A DNA stretch of 45,997 bases from Trichosphaerium sp. ATCC 40318. Lineage: Eukaryota; Protista; Tubulinea. Below are positions 70-44,918 of this stretch, one piece after another. Numbering within the stretch: position 1 is the stretch's first letter; each line of letters begins with the position of its first letter. The translations under genes were made by a program, and so were the position numbers. The DNA is taken from the NCBI GenBank assembly GCA_038496445.1, contig JALMLS010000157.1, positions 1-45,997 of the forward strand, read 5' to 3'. The notes beneath the pieces were generated by a model, which did not search any database, was not told the origin of the DNA, and was given only the letters and a program-made list of their open reading frames with translations.

Positions 70-474
70 ACAATTTAGTCGGGCCTCTGCCTCAGCAGGT
101 CGTCGCACCCGAAGGCTTGAGCGACTCCCTAGCTTACAACAGTAAATGCCCTAAGACCCTGTTCGAGTTCCCGTGGTTTACGGGGCCCCTGCGGGCGTTT
201 GCTAAGACGTGCTACTTGTGCCATAGTGTAGAACCTTTGCGGGCCGAAGCCTTTCGTTCGAGGAGGCGCAGCAACGACAATGTCGCCGCGCGGCTCTTGG
301 CGGCTGGGTTTCCGACTTTAGAGGCCTTCAGCCGTACTCCCAATGGCGTGGCTTCGCGAACCGCCCTCTCGGACGTCCGCGGACACTAGAGGCCACCGAT
401 GCCCGTTCCTCTCGTACTGAGGCATCGCTACCGACGACGCGCATGTTAATAAAATAGGCCCACCAGTAGGGTAA

Positions 475-518
<44 letters not shown>

Positions 519-1235
519 GTAAGTGGGTGAACAATCCAACCCTTGGAGCATTCTGCTACACCTGGATAGGAAGAGCCGACATCGAAGAATCAAAAAGTCG
601 CGTCGCTCTGAGCGCTTGGCGACCACAAGCCAGTTATCCCTATGGTAATTTTTCTGTCACCCCAGTGTCAGGTTACATGACTAGTCACGAGGGATCTCTA
701 GGCCTCCCGTTAGGGTGCAAGAGCGATGGCTCCACTCTTGCTCAAGGGGGCTTTTAGCCTTGGCCTCTACGTGGGGTTTCTGTCCCCACTGAGCTCCCCT
801 TAGGTCATCCGTGTTACCCTATAGCGGATGTGCCGCCCCAGCCAAACTCCCGGCCACGCGCTGTCCGCCTTAATGCTTGTCAAAGTTCCGGAATCGGAAG
901 GTAATCCGCACTTTCGATTGGGCCCGCCTCATCCTAAGAACCGACTTGTATGGTTCGAGCAGCGCCACGTCCTCCGAAGAGGCAGGCGCTTTCGCCCGTT
1001 TTGAATGCGTCTGGGGCCCGACCTCCGGAGTAGAAGTGTTACACCTTTCGTAAAAAACTACTTCCTACCCTATACCTCCAGTGCCAAGCCCCTAAGCGTG
1101 GTGAGAGTCAAACTCAACAGGGTCTTCTTTCCCCGCTGGTAGAAAAGTCGCCCGTTCGCGACTCTGTGGTTTCGCCACGGTCGGCGTAGGGACAGCGAGA
1201 ACCTCATTCATCCATTCATGCGCGTCATTAGTTAC

Positions 1236-1285
<50 letters not shown>

Positions 1286-3897
1286 AACCCGTGCTTGGGT
1301 GAAATTAAGCACCGCAACTTTCAAAGCACTGGGCAGGAGTCACCCTTTGTCAGACCTCAGAGGAGGTATCAAAGGGCTAAGTTTTAAGTAAACAGTTGGG
1401 TTCTCTAAGCTTCTGAGAGTTCCGCCATGATCCGCTTGTGGACCTCTTTGCAGGGACTGTGCGCCATTCCCGAAGGGGCTACACTGAAGTAGCGCAGACG
1501 CACGTCGTCCCGGGTCCCGGTCAGCAGAGCCAGCCCTTTTCCCGAAGTTACGGGCCGCGTATGCCGACTTCCCTTACGCCGTTTACACCGTGCAGCGCCA
1601 GAGGTGACTAACCTAGGGGACCTGATGCGGTTTTCGGTACGGTATGAGCCTGGAGGACACTGAACACCCGAAAGTGTCGGCTTCGGAGAGGAGCAGCCTC
1701 GTGAGAACGAGCTCACCAACACCCCTAGAAAGCAAAAGTGCTTTCCCATTAGCTACCCTCGACTCTTTCCCTTCGCCGCTTTACGTGGCTCCGGGGAGTT
1801 TCCCTCGAATAGCTTAGGCGCGGGAGAAGGCCCCAGAAGTGTGGTTGCTCGCGTGCGCTCTCTCTCTCAGTGTTGCCACTTCTAAAGCAAATGCATCCTC
1901 CTTACCCATGCCCTGGATTACTCACCAGGTTGCCTTTCGCCGAGTTGAAAGCATCGCAGACTTCCACCAGTCTTCAGAACCGTAAAGTTCATCTGAACAG
2001 GTGTCGTCTGCCAGCATCAAACAGTATACTCTATTAGGAGCTGGCTTAGGACCGGCTAACTCGCAGCTGAATGCCATCACCGCGAAACCCTTCCCCACTT
2101 GGGCGACCTGGCTGTGATAAACACTGTTTCACCAGGCTCCAATTGCTACTACCACCAAGATCATCACTGCTGGTGGCTCCGGGTGGACGCCACCGCCCCC
2201 CTTCTACGCCACCAGCACGCCGTCCTACCGCACCCTGGGCCGAGCCGGGGCGATCGCGCAGCGGCGGCTAAGGCAGTTTAGCGCCATCCATTTTCGGCGC
2301 GTCCCAATTCGGCTGGTGAGAAGTTACTCACTCCTTAGAGGATGACGACTTCCATGTCCACCTTCCAGCTGTCTAAACTGGAACACCGCCTTCGTTGTCT
2401 TGGTTACTGCCTATTCGGGCGCCTTTGCTGCTGCTCGCGTTTAAAACCGTCTCGTCAGTCCTGCTTATCAAGACCGGCCCAATAGGGGTCCACCGTCTCG
2501 GTGATCACAGCCATTCGGCCTGTGATCGGTCGCCTCTTATGTGTTTGATAATAGGTCGATGGCAACTTTGGCCTCCGATACCTCTTTCCAGTGGCTCTAC
2601 GAGACGAGACCGGCGTCACGGACCCCCTCTATCCTTAGGGATACTTCGAACGGTACCAGCTACGTTGGCAGCTCGTTTGGTCTCTCGCCCCTATACCCAA
2701 TGTCCGGCGAGCGATTTGCACGTCAGCAACGCTACGGGCGTCCAGCGGGATTTCTCCCGCCTTCCCCCTTTTCGGGTATAGATCGCTACCTTTCGGGTAT
2801 CGCCCAACGTACTATCGCCTGCCAAGAGAACAACGCCGGAGATGGCAAAGTGTATCTACTTTGGTGTGACGTGTTTTTAATTACTTGCGTAACATAAAAA
2901 CATGATAATAGCATAGTCGGTTTTTTATGTCGATCTTTGCAAACTTATACATGTAATGTAATACGTTTGTTTTTATATAAAGAACTTGACGGCCTAGGAG
3001 CTTATCCTTGGCTTCATTTCTGTGCGGGTTGGAGGTTTGATCTCTCACCCTCGCACGCTCGGCGAACTCCTTGATCCGTGTTTCAAGACGGGATACACGG
3101 AGGCCATGGCCCAATAAGGGCATAGAGCCTCATTGAGGTTGTGGACGATGAATGACGAACTTCGTTCCTTTCGGAAGAAGACGTACATTCGGAGGTTTCA
3201 GTAATTTCAGTGAACCAACGCCATTTAAAGGTTTAAAAGTGCTTTTTGATGTCCTTTCAACCAAACCCACGTTTTTATGCTTTTCAGCTTGTAGGATGGT
3301 GTGGACAGCACAATTAGCCAGTATGACTTTTTTGTGTTAGTCACTTCTATGTTACCTTCCCCTCGACGTTTTGTTTCATTATAATCTTCCAGGGCACAAG
3401 GCCCCGGTCGCTTTTCCCTCGCTACAAGAGCGTCTGCCATGTGCAGATTAGGTGCAGGGCACCTACGTACTCCGTGCCATTTGTACCCTTGCCGGCTTCG
3501 GGTCTTTTAACCCTCTATCGAGGAGTGCTGTTTCAGTCTTCCCTCACGGTACTGGTGCGCTATCGGCCACCTCCCGATACTTAGCCTTGCCGGGTAACCT
3601 CCCGGTAACTTCGTATGGCACGGCCAAACCATACTACTCCTGGACGATGGGACTCTATTTCCTCGGTTGACAGCGTACGGGGCTCGCACCCTCTACGGCT
3701 ACGACTCGTGCGTAATTCCCGTCAACGTCTGGAAGAGCCACCACGCCTTAGCCCACAACTCCGATGCTAGGCTCGGATTCAGGCTTGAGCTTGTCCCCTT
3801 TCGCTCGCCGCTACTCAGGGAGTCCCTTTTGGTTTCCTTTCCTCTGCCCCAATGATATGCTTAACTTAGGCAGGTCGCCAAGTGTAACTCAGGACGC
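70..3897 (-). rRNA. 28S rRNA: LSU (28S-type) rRNA, highly divergent
   Basis: Reverse complement contains the LSU 5' signature (..AAGTTAAGCATATC), CCCGTCTTGAAACACGGA (~3075-3092), GACTCTCTTAAGGTAGCCAAATGCCTCGTCA (~1237-1268), the peptidyl-transferase region (GATGTCGGCTCTTCCTATC; GAGCTGGGTTTAGACCGTCGTGAGACAGG) and the sarcin-ricin loop AGTACGAGAGGAAC (~405-418). Ends approximate. Confidence 0.97.
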
Positions 3898-4095
3898 AAG
3901 TTGTGTTTTTTTAATGCTTTCAGTATAGAACCAACCTTCCCTCTAAAGCTTCGCTTAAGTAAGCTAGGCATGAGTTCTGGAGGAACGTCACTTCCGGCAA
4001 TTTATTAATTAGTTGTGGCAACCACTTTCTTTTTTAGAAGATTAAGTGTGTACACCATACGCAGCACCAAATAAATTTAGTGTTTGTTTTGCTGG
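3898..4095 (-). other. ITS2
   Basis: AT-rich spacer between the 5.8S-like segment and the LSU 5' end. Confidence 0.8.
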
Positions 4096-4258
4096 CGTCG
4101 CTGAGTCACGCTCCTTTGCCTGTGATTCGTGAGAATACAGAACGCGGCCTGAGGCATTCGGCAATGCCACCTTCAGATGAGAGCGATTCCGGTGGCTGGT
4201 TTCATAGTGATCCATGGCCTTCTTCGGGGAGGTGCCTAACCGTTCACCGACAAGGTTT
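4096..4258 (-). rRNA. 5.8S rRNA: 5.8S rRNA, highly divergent
   Basis: ~160-nt GC-richer island between two AT-rich spacers. Sense strand AAACCTTGTCGGTGAACGG...CGAAGAAGGCC...GCCGAATG...GACTCAGCGACG aligns loosely to the 5.8S consensus, and the position is as expected. Confidence 0.8.
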
Positions 4259-4492
4259 GGTTTCTTTCGAAAATCTTGACGTTCTTTATAGTCGTGCCAC
4301 GACTGTGTTTTGGTTTGCCAAAATGGCGGTTGTGGAGCTGGCAGATATACAAGATATCACCACAGCAGAGGATGATTACATCTTCACTTACCGAGGTAAG
4401 ATTAGATTTACCAAACCAGAGCTGATACTCCAATTTTTTTTAAACTTGGTTAAAAGTTGGTTTAATTGCTTCTAAGGGTTAAATACCAATAG
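4259..4492 (-). other. ITS1
   Basis: Spacer between the SSU 3' end and 5.8S. Confidence 0.8.
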
Positions 4493-7130
4493 TATTGATC
4501 CTTCAGCAGGTTCACCTACTGAAACCTTGTTACGACTTCATCATCCTTTATGAGCGCAAGTTCGAGCAGGTTCGATAACCGGCAAGCCGGTCGTCCCCCT
4601 GGTCTCACTCGCACCCACATCGGTCGATGCGACGGGCGGTGTGTACAAGCAACAGGGACAGATTCCAGGTGCGTTGATGACACACCTGTACGAGGCATTC
4701 CGCGTTCGTGGCTACAGTTACAGCAACCAGTCCCTAAGCACGCATGTGTCTTTTCGAAGAAGCAGCATTGAGCACACTTAACATCCAAATCGACCACACG
4801 GTGCGCTTTCATGTATTTTTTTATGAACATTGCAGAAACTTGCTTCATAATAAAGTTTGCCTTGGTAAAGATATAATCTTCCAAGTCAAAGCATTTAAGT
4901 GAAGAAGAAACCTTGTTTGTTAATTTGAAACGATCCACAGCTCTTTCAATGTTTACACTAAGGAACAAGTCCAAAGATGTAAGTTTCATCTAACAGCGCT
5001 TCTCGTCTTAACATTAAAGGAATTTAACTTCCTAAAAAGCCTCGACGAGGGGGTTAACTCTTTATATTAGGTTCAGGACAGACTTTGTTTGAAGGTGGTA
5101 GTTTCCGAAGGTGCGTTTAAGTGTAGTCGTATTTAGATAATAAAATCTGAGGTTTAACTCGCTGTCGTGAAGAAGTGTTCTGGCGGTTTCAGGGCTTGCC
5201 CGGATGCCTGTTCGGCCCAGGAACCCGTTGAACTAAGCAGTGTAGGCCGCGTGCGGCCCGGAATATCTGGGGGCATCCCGGATCTGTTATAGCCGCCGCT
5301 TCTTACGACTTTTCGCCGTCAGTCCTGCACAGGGGTCCCGCACGAGGCGGGGGAATCAATGTGACAGTAGCGATCTCGCCCGTTATCGGAATAAACCTGA
5401 CAGATAAGTCCACGAGCCTAAAACGACCATGCACCACCGTTAGCTAACTCGGAAAAGACCCTTCAGTCTGTTCGTCCCCTTAGAGCGTCCGATCCCGGTA
5501 AGTTGTCGCGCGTTGAGTCAAATTGAGCCGCAGCCTCCAGAGCCTGGTGGTGTTGCTCCGTCAATGCCTTTAAGTTTCAGCCTTGCGACCATACTTCCCC
5601 CCTGGGCCCGATTACTTCGGTTTCCCGTGGGAACGGGCCCCGAGCCTTGGTTTGCCCGGCGCCCATTCAGTCGGCATCGTTTACTGTGGAGACTACACGG
5701 GTCTCTAATCCGCTTCGCTCCCTCCACCATCGTTCTAGATCACCGGCCACGCCCTTGCAGAGCGCCTTCGCTTCGGGTAGTTTGGATCAGGTCAAAAGAT
5801 TTCACTCCTCGCTGATACCACACTCTCTACCCCGTACGCACCTAGTAATCGTGTGTTCTTTATTAGTGTGAAGACTAACTCAAGTTTTCCTCAAAGTACT
5901 TTTGTAATTCACAATGTTTTTATTCCCTTAATGAAGAACATGAGTTTTCACTCAGACTTGCATATCAGGATATTGTTCATACTTAGTTAAAATGAGACTT
6001 GAGCGTCGCACTTGGTAAAGTGTTGTTTTTTGTTTTTTTAAAGCCCAATTCCAGGATGCTGGTGGGTGGCATAGCGGCCGAAGCCTAAACTGACCTTGCG
6101 TTTGAGCGAAGCCATTTATGCCTGGTCGGGCGATGAAAAAGAGTCGGGGGTTTTGTCAAGGAGTAAACTCCTATCTAAACCTTGTCCCTCTCAGCTGTGT
6201 CGTTGTTTGGACTGCGAGCGCTTTAACAGCAACAGCAAAAGTATAAGCTTTCGGAGTGGGTGTTACCGCGGGTGCTGGCACCCAACTTGTCCTCCAATAG
6301 TTTCTCAGGGCGACATTCAGTTGCCCCTCATTGCGACGACCGGTTTAAATGCCGGCCTCGTTACACTCAGTCGCTGGCTCGATTTGCAATCAATGGCCAA
6401 GTTACGCGCCTGCTGTTACCCGTAAGTACAGGGGCCGTATCTAATGCCCCTTCTCCGGGAACCGAACCCTAGTTCCCCGTTACCCGTCACTGCCGCGGTA
6501 GGCCGTTACCCTACCGCCTGGCTGATAGGTCGGCCGCCCTTCCGACTCGTGGAGGGGGAGAACTCTCAACTTTATATCGATATGATCTTTATGAAAAAGC
6601 ACATTCAGCGAAGGATCGAGATTTGAACAATGTTCATTTTTCTTTCACCTAGTTTCACTTGTGTAAACTTTACATTTTTTTGAAACATGTCTAGTCAGAG
6701 AGAACTCCTCATAACTCCATCGCATGCCCCAACGCCGCTCTTCCCGACGGAGTACGGACGCCGCTTCCTAAGGGGAGGCTGCTTCCCTTGGCGAACCAAG
6801 ATGGGATCGGGTGATCGTCCGCTCCTGAGCGTTGGATGCGACCGATGGGTCCTTGCAGCAGAGGGGCCCATCGGCAGCGCTAGGCGCATTACGTATTAGC
6901 CGCAGGTTTCCTTTAATCCCGGTTATCCGCGGGGAGGCCACGAGTTTTGGTTATAGTGCGTTTAGGAAACGAGTTCCTGTGTGCAAAATGACGTGACCAT
7001 TATTAGTCTTGTCGGGTGGGTTACGACCGTTTTAAGGAGCCGTTTGCGGCTCCGAGGATACCTCTTTGCTGAGCTTGCATGGCTTAATCCTTCGAGAAAG
7101 CTTATCACTCCTGGCAGGCTCAACCAGGTA
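4493..7130 (-). rRNA. 18S rRNA: SSU (18S-type) rRNA, ~2.64 kb, highly divergent with large insertions
   Basis: Sense strand begins TACCTGGTTGAGCCTGCCAGG and contains GTGCCAGCACCCGCGGTAA, GCAAGGCTGAAACTTAAAGG, GTACACACCGCCCGTC, ending AAGTCGTAACAAGGTTTCAGTAGGTGAACCTGCTGAAGGATCA. Confidence 0.98.
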
Positions 7131-8650
7131 CCTTTTGCATCAGAGTTTTTAAAGCAGATAGCTGCATTTAAAATAATTTCTCATCAGACCAAAGGTGGTT
7201 GAGGTTTTTAGGTGGTTTTTTGAAGAATGAACTTCATAAGAAACCATTCAATCTACATTCCTATTCTCTTTCAAGGAGGATATATAGATGAAGGTCTTTT
7301 TGATGAACATCACAAATACCTGGTGCCGGACAACATCAGCCTTTCTTGTTGGAGAAGAAGCTGATGTGTCTTGGTTATGGTTTTTATGGCAAGAGATGCT
7401 CATAGAGCACATTGCCACAACAGCATAGGGTTGTGTCTTTTTAAAGGACTACTTTTCTTGATGAGTCATGCCTATTTTTTTTACTGAGTAGCCATTGAGG
7501 CATCGTCGGTAATAGCTTGCAACTGCATCATTTTTCATACACTCTTTTTTTTTTTATTTTTCTTTACTATTCAAGTACTTGAACTGTGCCTTTCCTTGTT
7601 AAGCCTTCAAGTTGTAGCAATTAGCTACACTTGCTTTTATTGATGTACTTGGCTTGTGTGCCTTTCCATCAATTTGCCTTTCACATTTTATTGCTTCAGG
7701 CTCACATCCTGTATTATTACCCAAGTACTTGATACTTGTCTTTCCATTGGGTGTTTCAGATGTGGTCAATACAACTTTTGTGAATTACTTGGAGCACTTT
7801 GACTCCTTTCATCCACCTAAGCATGTGAATTTGCACATACTTAGAGCTGTATTGTCGTAGTATAACCATGAACTCGATTAGCATTTCTACACCTTTTTTT
7901 TTTGGAGGTGTTATAATGTTAGAAGAGAACATGTGTTCATACTATTGGCAGTTGTTGCCCACTGAGGGCTTCAACTTGATTTACATACTCCTGGTGGTGT
8001 GACTTGCACATACCTAGGAACCGTGAATTTGCCTAATCTTGCCATTCGATTAGCATTTCTACACCTTGTGGTAAAGTGTTCTAATGCTAGAAGAGATGGC
8101 TCAGTTTCGGGCTAACATGACTCGATTAGCATTTCTACACTTTCAAATGAGTGTTCTAATGCTAGAAGAGCACATGTGGGTTTGTACACAAGTGGTTGTT
8201 GCCCACTAAGGGCTTCAAAACTCATGGTTTTCATGTTGCATTTACCTGTTTGCCCACTGAGGGCTACAAAGCTTAATACTTCAATTTGTGTATTGACAAT
8301 AACTCGATCGACATCTCTTTATCAATCTGTTAATTTAAGTGACAGAGATAAGATGAAGGAGGAGTATAGTGTCTAGTTTATTGTAAACAATGCATTAGTC
8401 CACTGAGGACAATGATTGTAACAAAGTGCGTATTTCTAATGATACAAGTAACTCGATTAACACATTTTACATATGAAAGAAGAGTACTTTGTGGTCACTG
8501 ACAACATTGCCACTATTGAAGTGAAATGTTGCTTGTGTCATTGAGAGTACAGTTTTCTTTTGTTATGATCCCAAGGACTCGATTAACATTTCTACGCTCC
8601 GTACTAAAACGTGCGTTATAATGATAGAAGAGAACTCTTCATTCTGGGGG
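7131..8650 (-). other. Probable 5' external transcribed spacer / proximal intergenic spacer, hairpin-rich
   Basis: Directly upstream of SSU. Several imperfect inverted repeats (~7233-7307, 7330-7370, 7388-7417). Transcription start not identifiable. Confidence 0.6.
7866..8635. repeat. Interleaved array of two hairpin-forming repeats (motif A x6, motif B x5)
   Basis: Motif A, CTCGATTAGCATTTCTACAC-loop-GTGTT(C/A)TAATG(C/T)TAGAAGAG, at ~7872, 8044, 8120, 8577, degenerate at 8302 and 8451. Motif B, GCCC-ACT(G/A)A-GGGC, at ~7951, 8196, 8247, variant GTCC-ACTGA-GGAC at 8393, degenerate at 8490. Confidence 0.9.
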
Positions 8651-10654
8651 GGCCGGACACAGTACTAAAGCTGCTATGTTACACATACAACAAACAACCA
8701 ACGGGCATCGTCATCGATGGATATACTAAGAGACGTGCTTAACTCGCCCTTTTCTATCACATAAGAAAGCTAGAGTAGCCATACTTGTGGTTTTGTGTTT
8801 TTTTTTATGTGTGCATAAGCGCAACTAGAATGCTCATGTCCAACTTTCCAGTAGGAAGAACGGTATCGCGTAGCAAACAGGATTTACAGCCATGTGCTCT
8901 AAAACGCTCAAAAACTCAATAGAACCACGTGATTGGTTCCATGTGTTTTTTGTTGCAATAGAAGAATACAGACCACCCTTTTCGCTACGTTTTGAGCCAC
9001 AAGTCGATTACCGCTGCCTATGGTGCTTATGTTTTTTACGCATTTTTCATAGGGGCTTTACGTGGTAGAAGACGACGGCATCATTCTAGGTCCTCGCGCT
9101 TACCGTCGCACCCGATCGCACTCCTGCGTTTTGTTTGGAATGTTGATCAGGCGCGATAGCCAGTCACCGTAAATGTGCTGCACGATGGGCGGACCCATAT
9201 CACCGTGCACTCCCTGTGGGCTCTTTCATCGAGTAAAAACAAAAGGTTGCAGCATTCGTCGCATCTTTTCTTCTCAAGAAGAAAAAACGCTTTTGCATTC
9301 GACCGATTATTTTTTTGTTTTTCTCGATTGTGCCAAGGGAAAGAGATCCGACTTCTGCAGGCGTTTGTCGCTCAAAATTTTTCCTTGTCTTTCTGCGCAG
9401 GCAAATCGCCTGGCAGTTGATGGGAATTTGATTTTGGTTTATGCCTCGTAGCCTTTTCTCCATTTACGCCGCCATTAGGCTACACGGTTGTAAGACTGCC
9501 TCCCTTTCCCGAAAATATCGAGTTTTCGTAGTCCTGGCTTGGTTCAATGCCGCTATTACTCACTTTAGGACGCAGTACAAATATCCACGGTTGGGAAAAA
9601 AAACTTTTCGAAGCTTTGTTTATCGCGTTGTACCCGCCCCCTGCGCTTTGTGCCGCCTTTTTTTCGTCATAAACTACTTGCGGCTGGGGTTTTTAACCAC
9701 TTGGCGCTGTTATTTCTCATTTGTAGCGTTGGTACGTTTTATTTTCTGGATATTTTGTCCAAAAAAAAAACCAACTTCTTTTTTTTTTGAGTTCAAATCG
9801 CTTTATTTATGGTCTTTACGCTCTTTTCAATCAATTTACGCACTACAAATCGCTATGGCTCGTCTACGTCGCCTTTCCTGTCCACCATGAATTTATCTTG
9901 ACGACGAACGCAAAAAAACAACCATCAAAAATCTTCTTACGCTTCATTTTTTATTATACCACTGTCTTTCTCCCGTACACAATTGTGTCAAAAAAATAAC
10001 AACCACGATCCAATCCGATGCGCGGCAAGATTGGTACTTATCCTACAAGATGTTAACGTCATATGGCTTGTTTGCTAGCCCTCACTATCGCTAACGTTTG
10101 GTTGTGCCACGTGAAAGATAGCGTAAAAAAAAAAAAAGTGCCCAACAAGTAACCTTTGTCTACTCGATCGAGTTGTGAGCTATGTGTACATTTTAACAAC
10201 AAGCTTATAAGGCCCAGATAAGCGATAAGGGGGTCTGGTAGTAAGTGTTGTAAATGTTAGAGCTTAGCTGGGTTTTTTTTTTAAAGCACAACATAGTAAA
10301 ACTGCGCGTGCTACGTTACAATCATTTATTTTTTTTTTTACACTGGATTTATTTTACACCACTGGGCGCGACACGGAAGTTTGAGCTTGTGGTTACATAA
10401 AAAATTACGCCCAATTTATTTTATCGCCCTGTAATCTTAAAACCCCAAGATGAAAGTACACACAAGGGTACTCTCTTCGCTACACAAGCAAAAAATGGGT
10501 AGGCGAATGGGGGTGGGGGATTAAAAATACCGCAACAAACTTTCGTTCTGAATTCTACAAAGGAAAAGATAGTTAGCGGAAGGTTTTGTTATATTTTGTT
10601 GGATGAAAAAAAATTTTTGTTGCTGCTAAACAGTTTGTTTTTTGGGTATGCACC

Positions 10655-43349: not shown

Positions 43350-44918
43350 TTATAGGCATGGTACTCCCTTGTACGACTGCTTCAAACAACAATGTATAAA
43401 CAAGTGATCATAGTGAACAATACTAACGCCTTGTAAGTCTTTATAACATCTTGCATTGATATGGGTCATGTCAGCAAAAGAAAAAACACCTTTATAAAAC
43501 AATTCAGTAATTTTTGCATGAGTGACGTCTTCACAATCATTAAGGCCAATAGTATGTACCCCGGCAATTGCCTCAATACCTTCACCTGTAACAGACGTGC
43601 TATCAAGGTTGATGGCATAAACTCCAGCGAGTGCTTTGATGCCCTCATCTGTCACTAAAGTGCGAGAAAGGTCAATGGCATAAACACCTGCAAGTGCTTT
43701 AACTCCTTCATCTGTAACAGCTGTATCTCCAAGATGTATAACATGAACACCTGCCAGAGTTTTTATACCTTCATCTGTCACTGATGTATTTTGGAGGTGT
43801 ATAGTATGAACACCCTTTAACGATTTGATACCTTCATCTGTCACTGATGTATTCTGGAGGTCTATACTGTGGACACCTTTTAAAGCTTTGATACCTTCAT
43901 CTGTTATATTTGTGTAAGCAAGGTCAATGGTATGAACGCCATTTAAATACTTTAGGCCTTCATCTGTCACTTGTGTACAATCCATAAGATCAATTGTATG
44001 CACACCTTTGAGTGATTTAAGGCCTTCATCTGTTACTTTACATCCAAAAAGGCTTATATCATGAACACCCTCCAGCTCTTTGATGCTTTCATCTGTTGCT
44101 GCAGTGAGAGAAAGATTAATAGTGTGCACACCTCTTAAACACTTGATGCCTTCATCTGTTATATTTTTACAATCTGCAAGACGAATGGAATGAACTCCAG
44201 AGAGTGCCTTAAGATCGTTATCATTAATAACATTATTGTCACGGGATACAATTCTCAAGTGCCCTGTAGCTATGTGGCGGCATCCAGATAACAATGAATA
44301 CAGAGTGTTGTTTTCAACTTCCATAATGACTGTACTGTTATTCATTATGCCTTTGTACTGTCTTATCTTTAGGATATCTGGAATGTCATAGATATATATC
44401 TTTTTGTATCCAACCACTTGGTGGATAATGTCAGCCATCAAATGACACGATTGAGCAACACTGAACCTTGATTTTGCATCTGTATGATTCAGAATAGTTG
44501 CAATAACCTCTGGAGGAAACTTGACAATATCATGATGTGTGCATGTTGTTGTCTGTGTCTGTGACCTTTATGGTTGCCTCGTTGTTAGTAACCTCTACTT
44601 GAGAACAGGTCATACGTACCCTCTTGCTTGTTTTAGTTTTGGTGCATGTATGCCCTCAGATTGTCCTGTGTGCACTTGTTCTGGTAAGCTATGGTTACCA
44701 GACTGTTCTTTGTGGCGTTTGGTTGCATTAACTTCTGTATCTATGTTTTTAAAGAGGTATTCTTCTAGTTGTTGTACAAGTCTCGCATTTGCAACGTTTA
44801 AGATACTTTCAAGTTGATTTATGAATACTTCTCGTTGTTTTGTAATTATTACGCCAAACTCTTCTGCATAATTATTACAATAGTACGCGATAGCTTGCTC
44901 TACTGAAACCAATTTCAT
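43350..44918 (-). CDS. F-box-like + leucine-rich repeat protein (2 exons)
   Basis: ORF 44610-44918 joins via a phase-2 GTACGT..AAG intron (~44568-44618) to DIVKFPPEVIATIL..RFSVAQSCH (F-box-like) and ~11 near-perfect 21-22 aa LRRs (LKGVHTIDL..TSVTDEGIKA). Confidence 0.85.
43530..44215 (-). repeat. Coding tandem repeat, 63-66 bp unit (LRR units)
   Basis: CCTTCATCTGT(C/T)AC-type block recurs at ~63-66 bp spacing. Confidence 0.9.

Follow-up and report, generated by a model that had tools for sequence, protein, structure and literature searches.

Upstream of the rRNA genes of this protist lies an array of short repeats that can fold back on themselves, and the locus raises the question of what such repeats are and whether their structure has been kept beyond simple repetition, as a reading of the letters without database searches (the sequence-only reading) had proposed. 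In the window, i.e. the whole 46-kb stretch of DNA that was analysed, both eukaryotic rRNA genes lie on the minus strand, and therefore the array at 7866-8635 is located 0.74-1.5 kb upstream of the SSU gene. The SSU 5′ end can be fixed near 7130, since the sequencing adapter in a 571-nt ENA contig (ERZ1029224) begins exactly at this end. In the 5′ part of the SSU, this contig (1-571) is almost identical to window positions 6600-7130, apart from small indels where the SSU is variable, which indicates that a close relative occurs in that sample. From about 9.5 kb on, the window is AT-rich and protein-coding, with exons of PARP, RNA ligase and LRR. Our best reading of the array is that it consists of rDNA upstream-spacer subrepeats made of fold-back modules, which makes it a structured form of a known kind and not a new category.

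Hairpin modules of the upstream spacer

The array contains two hairpin modules, A and B, whose copies are collected in Table 1. The 5′ arm of motif A was searched as a 20-mer with up to 3 mismatches and with 100 shuffles as control, and four matches were obtained in the window against 0 expected (none in the 100 shuffles). A covariance model (CM) built from four good copies and run unfiltered over the whole 46-kb window detected six plus-strand copies, all inside the array (7867-8638), including two diverged copies left out of its training (8297-8370 and 8446-8490). A probable seventh copy (A7), strongly diverged, lies 360 nt past the range given by the sequence-only reading, and a weak inverted A-like hairpin overlaps the element which that reading had called B′. 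Nothing further in the 46 kb scored better than E 2. For the core of motif B, five matches were found in the window against 0.36 expected, four of them in the array (7957, 8201, 8252 and 8398); the fifth, in the LSU gene, is likely a chance match, and apart from it motif B does not occur outside the array within the 46 kb. All A and B copies in the 46 kb fall within 7867-9078, i.e. the array repeats are confined to the rDNA. The proposed module order A-B-A-A-B-B-A′-B-A′-B′-A was found to be correct by the motif searches and the CM.

Table 1. rRNA genes and spacer elements in the window, ordered by position.
Feature	Position	Core	Strand	Basis and remarks
LSU rRNA (eukaryotic)	277-3897		-	Rfam
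SSU rRNA (eukaryotic)	4493-7130		-	Rfam
Proximal 5′ETS	7131-7555		-	Abundant in RNA runs
Four diverged ~75-nt C repeats	7556-7860		-	Repeat comparison; between array and abundant 5′ETS
A1 hairpin	7867-7933	7873-7927	+	CM 85 bits; RNA fold
B1 hairpin	7950-7976		+	Outer stem AGTTG/CAACT, TT/TT loop, GCCC/GGGC, loop ACTGA; z -3.05
A2 hairpin	8041-8101	8045-8095	+	CM, fold; closing stem GCCAT/ATGGC
A3 hairpin	8115-8177	8121-8170	+	CM, fold, pair table
B2 hairpin	8192-8221	8201-8213	+	Loop ACTAA
B3 hairpin	8247-8268	8252-8264	+	Core match, fold
A4, diverged A copy	8297-8370	8303-8364	+	CM 22.2 bits, E 0.0014 (whole window); fold z -2.7
B4 hairpin	8388-8418		+	Inner stem GTCC/GGAC (double change), outer stem CATT/AATG
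A5, truncated degenerate A copy	8446-8490	8452-8484	+	CM 21.8 bits, E 0.0019; poor plus-strand fold
Weak inverted A-like hairpin	8487-8545		CM match on -	17.3 bits, E 0.029, match at 8490-8543
A6 hairpin	8572-8638	8578-8632	+	CM, fold, pair table; inner stem ACGC/GCGT
A7, probable seventh A copy, strongly diverged	8997-9078		+	CM 15.7 bits, E 0.079

The predicted folds of motif A have negative z-scores, and the structural details described earlier are correct apart from small amendments. On the plus strand, fold z-scores range from -3.1 to -4.4 for A1-A3 and reach -2.7 for the diverged A4, which has the same architecture as the other A copies; for example, A1 folds with -23.6 kcal/mol (z -4.3) on the plus strand and with -15.5 kcal/mol (z -3.7) on the minus strand. 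A7 has the basal stem GTC/GAC instead of CTC/GAG and retains the GA/AA loop and the T.G, and it adopts the family architecture on the plus strand with a z-score of -2.2 versus -0.4 on the minus strand, while the inverted hairpin at 8487-8545 folds on both strands (z -2.1 and -2.6). Motif A had been given two fixed 3x3 internal loops, but the outer one is predicted to be a 2x2 loop, GA opposite AA, with a U.G pair next to it. The closing stems do vary and still pair, as had been stated (GCCAT/ATGGC and the CATG type); however, A1 and A3 close with one and the same palindrome, CATG, and these two are thus homologous and not independent covariation. For motif B, described as GCCC-ACTGA-GGGC with a conserved pentaloop, the compensatory GTCC/GGAC copy stands (at 8398), but the loop of B2 is ACTAA and the hairpin is longer than proposed, with a second outer stem which is copy-specific (GTTG/CAAC in B1 and CATT/AATG in B4).

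Self-comparison shows how the array was assembled. The segment 7867-7974 (A1 and B1) is 78% identical to 8116-8218 (A3 and B2), and 7807-7928 (leader and A1) is 70% identical to 7981-8096 (leader and A2). The interleaving of A and B therefore results from the duplication and rearrangement of a composite unit of about 175 nt. In Logan contigs of three runs, modules are joined in other ways (7929>8577, 8170>8572, 8366>8570 and 8218>8294), and many such joints imply other rDNA copies with fewer or differently ordered modules. Loose contig ends at 9222 and 9339 run on into diverged versions of the same sequence, which indicates that other rDNA copies differ there, while the unit in the window abuts single-copy protein-coding DNA. 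Between the array and the gene, each of the four C repeats carries GGAAAGGCACA and the perfect palindrome CAAGTACTTG; they lie directly upstream of the jump in RNA depth described below, and the depth steps down across them. We regard them as candidate promoter-proximal repeats, and they could be tandem duplicates of a promoter. A sliding fold scan found hairpins to be frequent throughout 7560-8640 and rarer in 8640-9470. One of them, at 7817-7844, is an 11-bp hairpin (CUAAGUAUGUG/CACAUGCUUAG on the rRNA-sense strand) with a z-score, in 75-nt context, of -5.2 on the sense strand versus -1.7 on the other, and a portion of it is repeated, with its order permuted, at about 7990-8035.

Conservation of pairing in motif A

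Several comparisons address the pairing of motif A, and their statistics rest on seven copies, all paralogues of one locus. First, in the six plus-strand copies of the array, 91.5% of the cells were standard pairs, against 23-52% when the partners were slid by 1-3 columns, and in five pairs both partners had changed (12 of 500 shuffles gave as many), in an alignment which was fitted to the model and is hence biased towards structure. Second, in a register-free table anchored on the basal stem, all seven copies have the 3-bp basal stem, an unpaired GA/AA (AG in A4) and the T.G, and the junction of GA/AA and T.G is present even in two copies with arm identity of about 60% or less. Third, the 5′ half of each copy was paired with the 3′ half of every copy over 720 permutations, and the pairing of own halves ranked 3/720 with whole halves, 14/720 with the apical parts alone and 21/720 with the 10-nt outer flanks alone.

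The individual changes are of the same kind. A4 carries two double changes from U-A to C-G, and in A6 an A-U pair of the inner stem is replaced by G-C, which agrees with the exchange of ACAC/GTGT for ACGC/GCGT noticed earlier in the copy at 8578. In A7, the basal C-G has become G-C, and two pairs of the second stem have become other Watson-Crick pairs. With RNA parameters, the family fold is still predicted for the diverged copies A4, A6 and A7. The apical loops, in contrast to these stems, are different in every copy, as had been noted, and in Logan contigs of other rDNA copies the same A arms enclose other apical inserts, at least five in number. The spacing of the arms ranges from 10 to more than 30 nt across the copies.

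The double changes, the own-halves ranks and the folds of diverged copies together indicate that the fold-back and one fixed asymmetric junction are conserved and that the apical loop is free. The claim that structure is kept beyond simple repetition is therefore upheld by the five double-change pairs, the 91.5% pairing, the own-halves rank of 3/720 and the double changes of A7, and we consider the evidence for conserved pairing in these seven paralogous copies good but not decisive. Template switching inside quasi-palindromes can imitate compensatory change, but it would not explain why the asymmetry of GA/AA and T.G is never corrected.

RNA depth, folding strand and polymer

The place of the array relative to the pre-rRNA was assessed with Logan contigs, which are unstranded, of four runs compared with 7140-10400 (3,261 letters). 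In the three runs that are RNA libraries, recorded or guessed (RNA-Seq is on record for run X6 only), the depth was 3469, 449 and 155 at 7140-7530 and about 200, 10 and 2 across the array, after a stepwise fall over 7576-7800. The drop at about 7530-7690 is 15- to 100-fold in these three runs, and the high-depth contigs stop at a run of A near 7555. Judged by this fall in depth of unstranded contigs upstream of about 7530, the main 5′ end of the pre-rRNA is probably near 7555-7800, and the array would then be located upstream of it. The weak signal of the array in the RNA runs may come from spacer transcription or from carried-over multi-copy rDNA. In all four runs, the depth is zero beyond about 9430-9540, and we read this as the end of the multi-copy unit, or of a transcribed spacer, near 9470. 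As a separate observation, the depth-3469 contig (run X2) has an Illumina adapter joined at 7319, 188 nt before the SSU; this junction marks a discrete abundant RNA end inside the 5′ETS, which may be an early processing site.

With regard to the strand, the A and B elements summed give -189 kcal/mol on the plus strand (antisense to rRNA) versus -165 kcal/mol on the other, with 17 versus 10 G.U pairs. The z-scores favour the plus strand in five of the seven A copies, and the invariant T.G of motif A is a wobble on the plus strand only. A preference for this strand, which had been proposed from the G-U pairs, is thus weakly retained for motif A on energy, G.U count and the invariant U.G, but the hairpin at 7817-7844 prefers the sense strand, so that the strand asymmetry is not uniform over the spacer. 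For motif A itself, the predicted folds let us lean slightly to the plus strand. When DNA parameters are used, only weak hairpins of -7 to -11 kcal/mol are predicted, and the family fold is no longer adopted by A6 and A7. These weak folds, with the wide range of arm spacing, tilt the fold-back reading to RNA on purely thermodynamic grounds.

The modules may, however, be cis elements of duplex or extruded DNA, such as a Pol I enhancer, an upstream terminator, or replication-fork barrier or origin sites that have dyad symmetry, with the hairpin potential as a by-product and the symmetry kept by template switching or repair in quasi-palindromes. We consider this explanation unlikely but serious. 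In well-studied rDNA spacers the position of the array is that of enhancer and terminator repeats, and such DNA elements would also fit the sequence conservation in the arms and at the asymmetric positions, the repeat number varying between rDNA units, the very low level of the array in RNA libraries and the wobble asymmetry, which is mixed across the spacer. Against them, neither cruciform extrusion nor binding of a rigid dimer to duplex DNA fits well with arms that are 10 to more than 30 nt apart, A4 and A7 change both arms complementarily while the presumed half-site sequence is lost, and in seven copies the asymmetric junction was never turned into a perfect palindrome. The weakness of the single-stranded DNA folds and the architecture lost in A6 and A7 also count against them.

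The depth profile bears on another explanation, in which the array belongs to a 5′ETS of 2 kb or more, as its distal part. The primary transcript would then begin near 9100-9470 and undergo an early cut near 7560, and the sense-strand hairpins of the array would bind early processing factors, much as nucleolin sites do or the plant A123B cluster that precedes the primary cleavage site. This arrangement is consistent with RNA-run contigs that cover 7576-9470 and stop there, with a depth gradient that climbs towards the gene, with the strong sense-strand hairpins in 7596-7850, and with A1-A3, which fold well on the sense strand too (z -3.7 to -4.5). We nevertheless judge it quite improbable. The 15- to 100-fold drop in depth lies at about 7530-7690, an end of the multi-copy DNA would account just as well for the stop at 9470, and gross differences in repeat number and order from unit to unit are more typical of untranscribed spacer. 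In addition, sense-strand folding is poor for A4, A6 and A7, with z-scores of -1.25, -0.4 and -0.4.

Proposed role and comparison with known elements

Returning to the reading of the array as structured spacer subrepeats, we estimate at roughly 40% the probability that A and B work at the RNA level, as hairpins of scarce spacer transcripts in which proteins read the junction of A and the loop of B, with an effect in cis on the rRNA genes. According to this proposal, an ancestral composite unit of about 175 nt, with a short leader, hairpin A and hairpin B, would have been duplicated and reshuffled in such a way that number and order came to differ between rDNA units, and selection would keep the A and B modules folding back on themselves. 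The asymmetric junction at the base of A, with its 3-bp stem, GA/AA loop and U.G, stays fixed in all seven copies, while the upper stems change yet pair and the apical loop is free; B retains the pentaloop ACUGA and the 4-bp G+C stem. The hairpins would be carried within low-abundance transcripts crossing the spacer upstream of the main pre-rRNA start, and proteins may recognise the fixed A junction and the B loop. Their action in cis on the rRNA genes might be regulation of the promoter or chromatin, or the handling of spacer transcripts.

Repeats in the spacer that precedes rRNA genes are commonly interpreted as enhancers in duplex DNA, whereas each repeat here keeps an intramolecular fold through sequence turnover. 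If A and B are RNA hairpins, structured spacer RNAs, so far mainly established in mammals, would extend to a distant protist lineage, and the locus would offer a compact pair of hairpin modules for finding the binding proteins. Should the array function purely as DNA, it would amount to a common spacer feature with an uncommon shape. A more far-reaching version of the RNA proposal, namely that A and B are a new family of protein-binding RNA hairpins on the rRNA-antisense strand and form a modular spacer RNA which controls the Pol I genes of a deep-branching protist and is read at the GA/AA and U.G junction and the ACUGA loop, seems to us very unlikely. Functionless palindromic spacer DNA, i.e. 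small foldback or MITE-like insertions or slippage products duplicating with the spacer, would account for the hypervariable apical centres, as at unstable palindromes, and for the degenerate A5, but we hold it to be highly improbable in view of the conserved B loop, the confinement of all copies in the 46 kb to the spacer, and a junction that is invariant in seven copies, two of them with about 60% arm identity or less.

Among known systems, the spacer subrepeats of other rDNAs come first, including the Xenopus 60/81-bp enhancers with spacer promoters, the Drosophila 240-bp and mouse 140-bp repeats and the plant SalI boxes. Like these, the array consists of short repeats that do not occur outside the spacer and probably lie upstream of the Pol I promoter. 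It was made by duplication of a composite unit, its modules differ in number and order from one rDNA unit to the next, and it is followed by repeats close to the promoter, for which the 75-nt C repeats are the candidates here. The Xenopus, Drosophila, mouse and plant repeats are not known to carry complementary arms specific to each copy, whereas both modules of the present array are hairpins whose pairing survives divergence. A second comparison is with mammalian promoter-associated RNA (pRNA) and other spacer transcripts, which are bound by NoRC/TIP5, and of which PAPAS is antisense. The proposed role resembles pRNA in that a low-abundance spacer RNA from upstream of the promoter, with a hairpin conserved in structure and not in sequence, would be read by protein; however, pRNA matches the gene promoter sequence, the array is without similarity to the region by the depth step, and the host is a distant protist.

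Protein-binding motifs are also found in the 5′ETS, for example the nucleolin hairpins with the loop U/GCCCGA and the crucifer A123B cluster before site P. The array shares with them repeated hairpins upstream of a probable early cleavage site or 5′ end of the pre-rRNA, and motif B similarly presents a conserved loop on a short G+C stem, but unlike in the nucleolin hairpins this loop is ACUGA, or UCAGU on the sense strand. In form only, the array is like bacterial REP/BIME arrays, with two interleaved types of imperfect palindrome, fixed mismatches and variable loops; those are prokaryotic, genome-dispersed and linked to RAYT transposases, whereas the present array is nuclear and rDNA-specific. 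Finally, the rDNA circles of Naegleria are reported to contain non-ribosomal sequence with numerous direct repeats (PMC7714845, PMC5805870); if the host were a heterolobosean, these would be the closest rDNA spacers described so far. The abstracts mention no hairpin family (PMC7714845, PMC5805870), and in contrast to the circles the rDNA unit here abuts protein-coding DNA.

Searches against known RNAs and sequences agree with the earlier remark that the array was not recognised as a known family. With Rfam, only LSU and SSU reached the gathering threshold over the window, and at permissive E-values the best spacer matches scored 12-22 bits against thresholds of 45-109, which is noise. Self-cleaving motifs and small-RNA (miRNA) precursors, both offered earlier as possible roles, are without Rfam support, as are snoRNA and tRNA, and ARAGORN found 0 genes for tRNA or tRNA-like cloverleafs in 7131-9600. 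When the array was compared with the rRNA genes for similarity or complementarity, exact matches were no longer than 12 nt, a length within the range of shuffles. Further candidate identities were also rejected. A nucleolin recognition element does not fit either strand of the B loop (ACUGA on plus, UCAGU on sense, not U/GCCCGA); identity with the gene promoter, as in pRNA, is contradicted by self-BLAST of 7131-9600, with no match of the array to 7131-7806; a MITE or foldback transposon disagrees with the lack of any copy outside the spacer in the window and with flanks that are homologous parts of a larger duplicated unit; and none of K-turn, loop E, H/ACA and C/D, compared by eye with their consensus, fits the A junction or the B loop.

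Relatives were sought beyond the window as well. When metagenomes were scanned with a 17-mer from the A arm, 95 single matches were obtained, none with the 3′ arm, a second copy or motif B, and we therefore take these as chance matches and not as relatives. Exact look-ups of six rDNA or spacer ORFs gave no match, nor did homology searches with an ORF of an SSU insertion and one of the distal spacer, and the ORF across the SSU 5′ end had one match, the 571-nt ENA contig, which ends at the SSU end without spacer. A literature search for hairpin subrepeats in rDNA spacers returned no described match.

Two minor observations concern the rest of the window. In 3898-4492, between LSU and SSU, no 5.8S match is listed at the Rfam gathering threshold, which may reflect the removal of an overlapping clan match or absorption of the 5.8S by the LSU model. 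In the protein-coding part, a 63-nt tandem repeat occupies 43679-43971 within a leucine-rich-repeat ORF at 43350-44441 on the minus strand.
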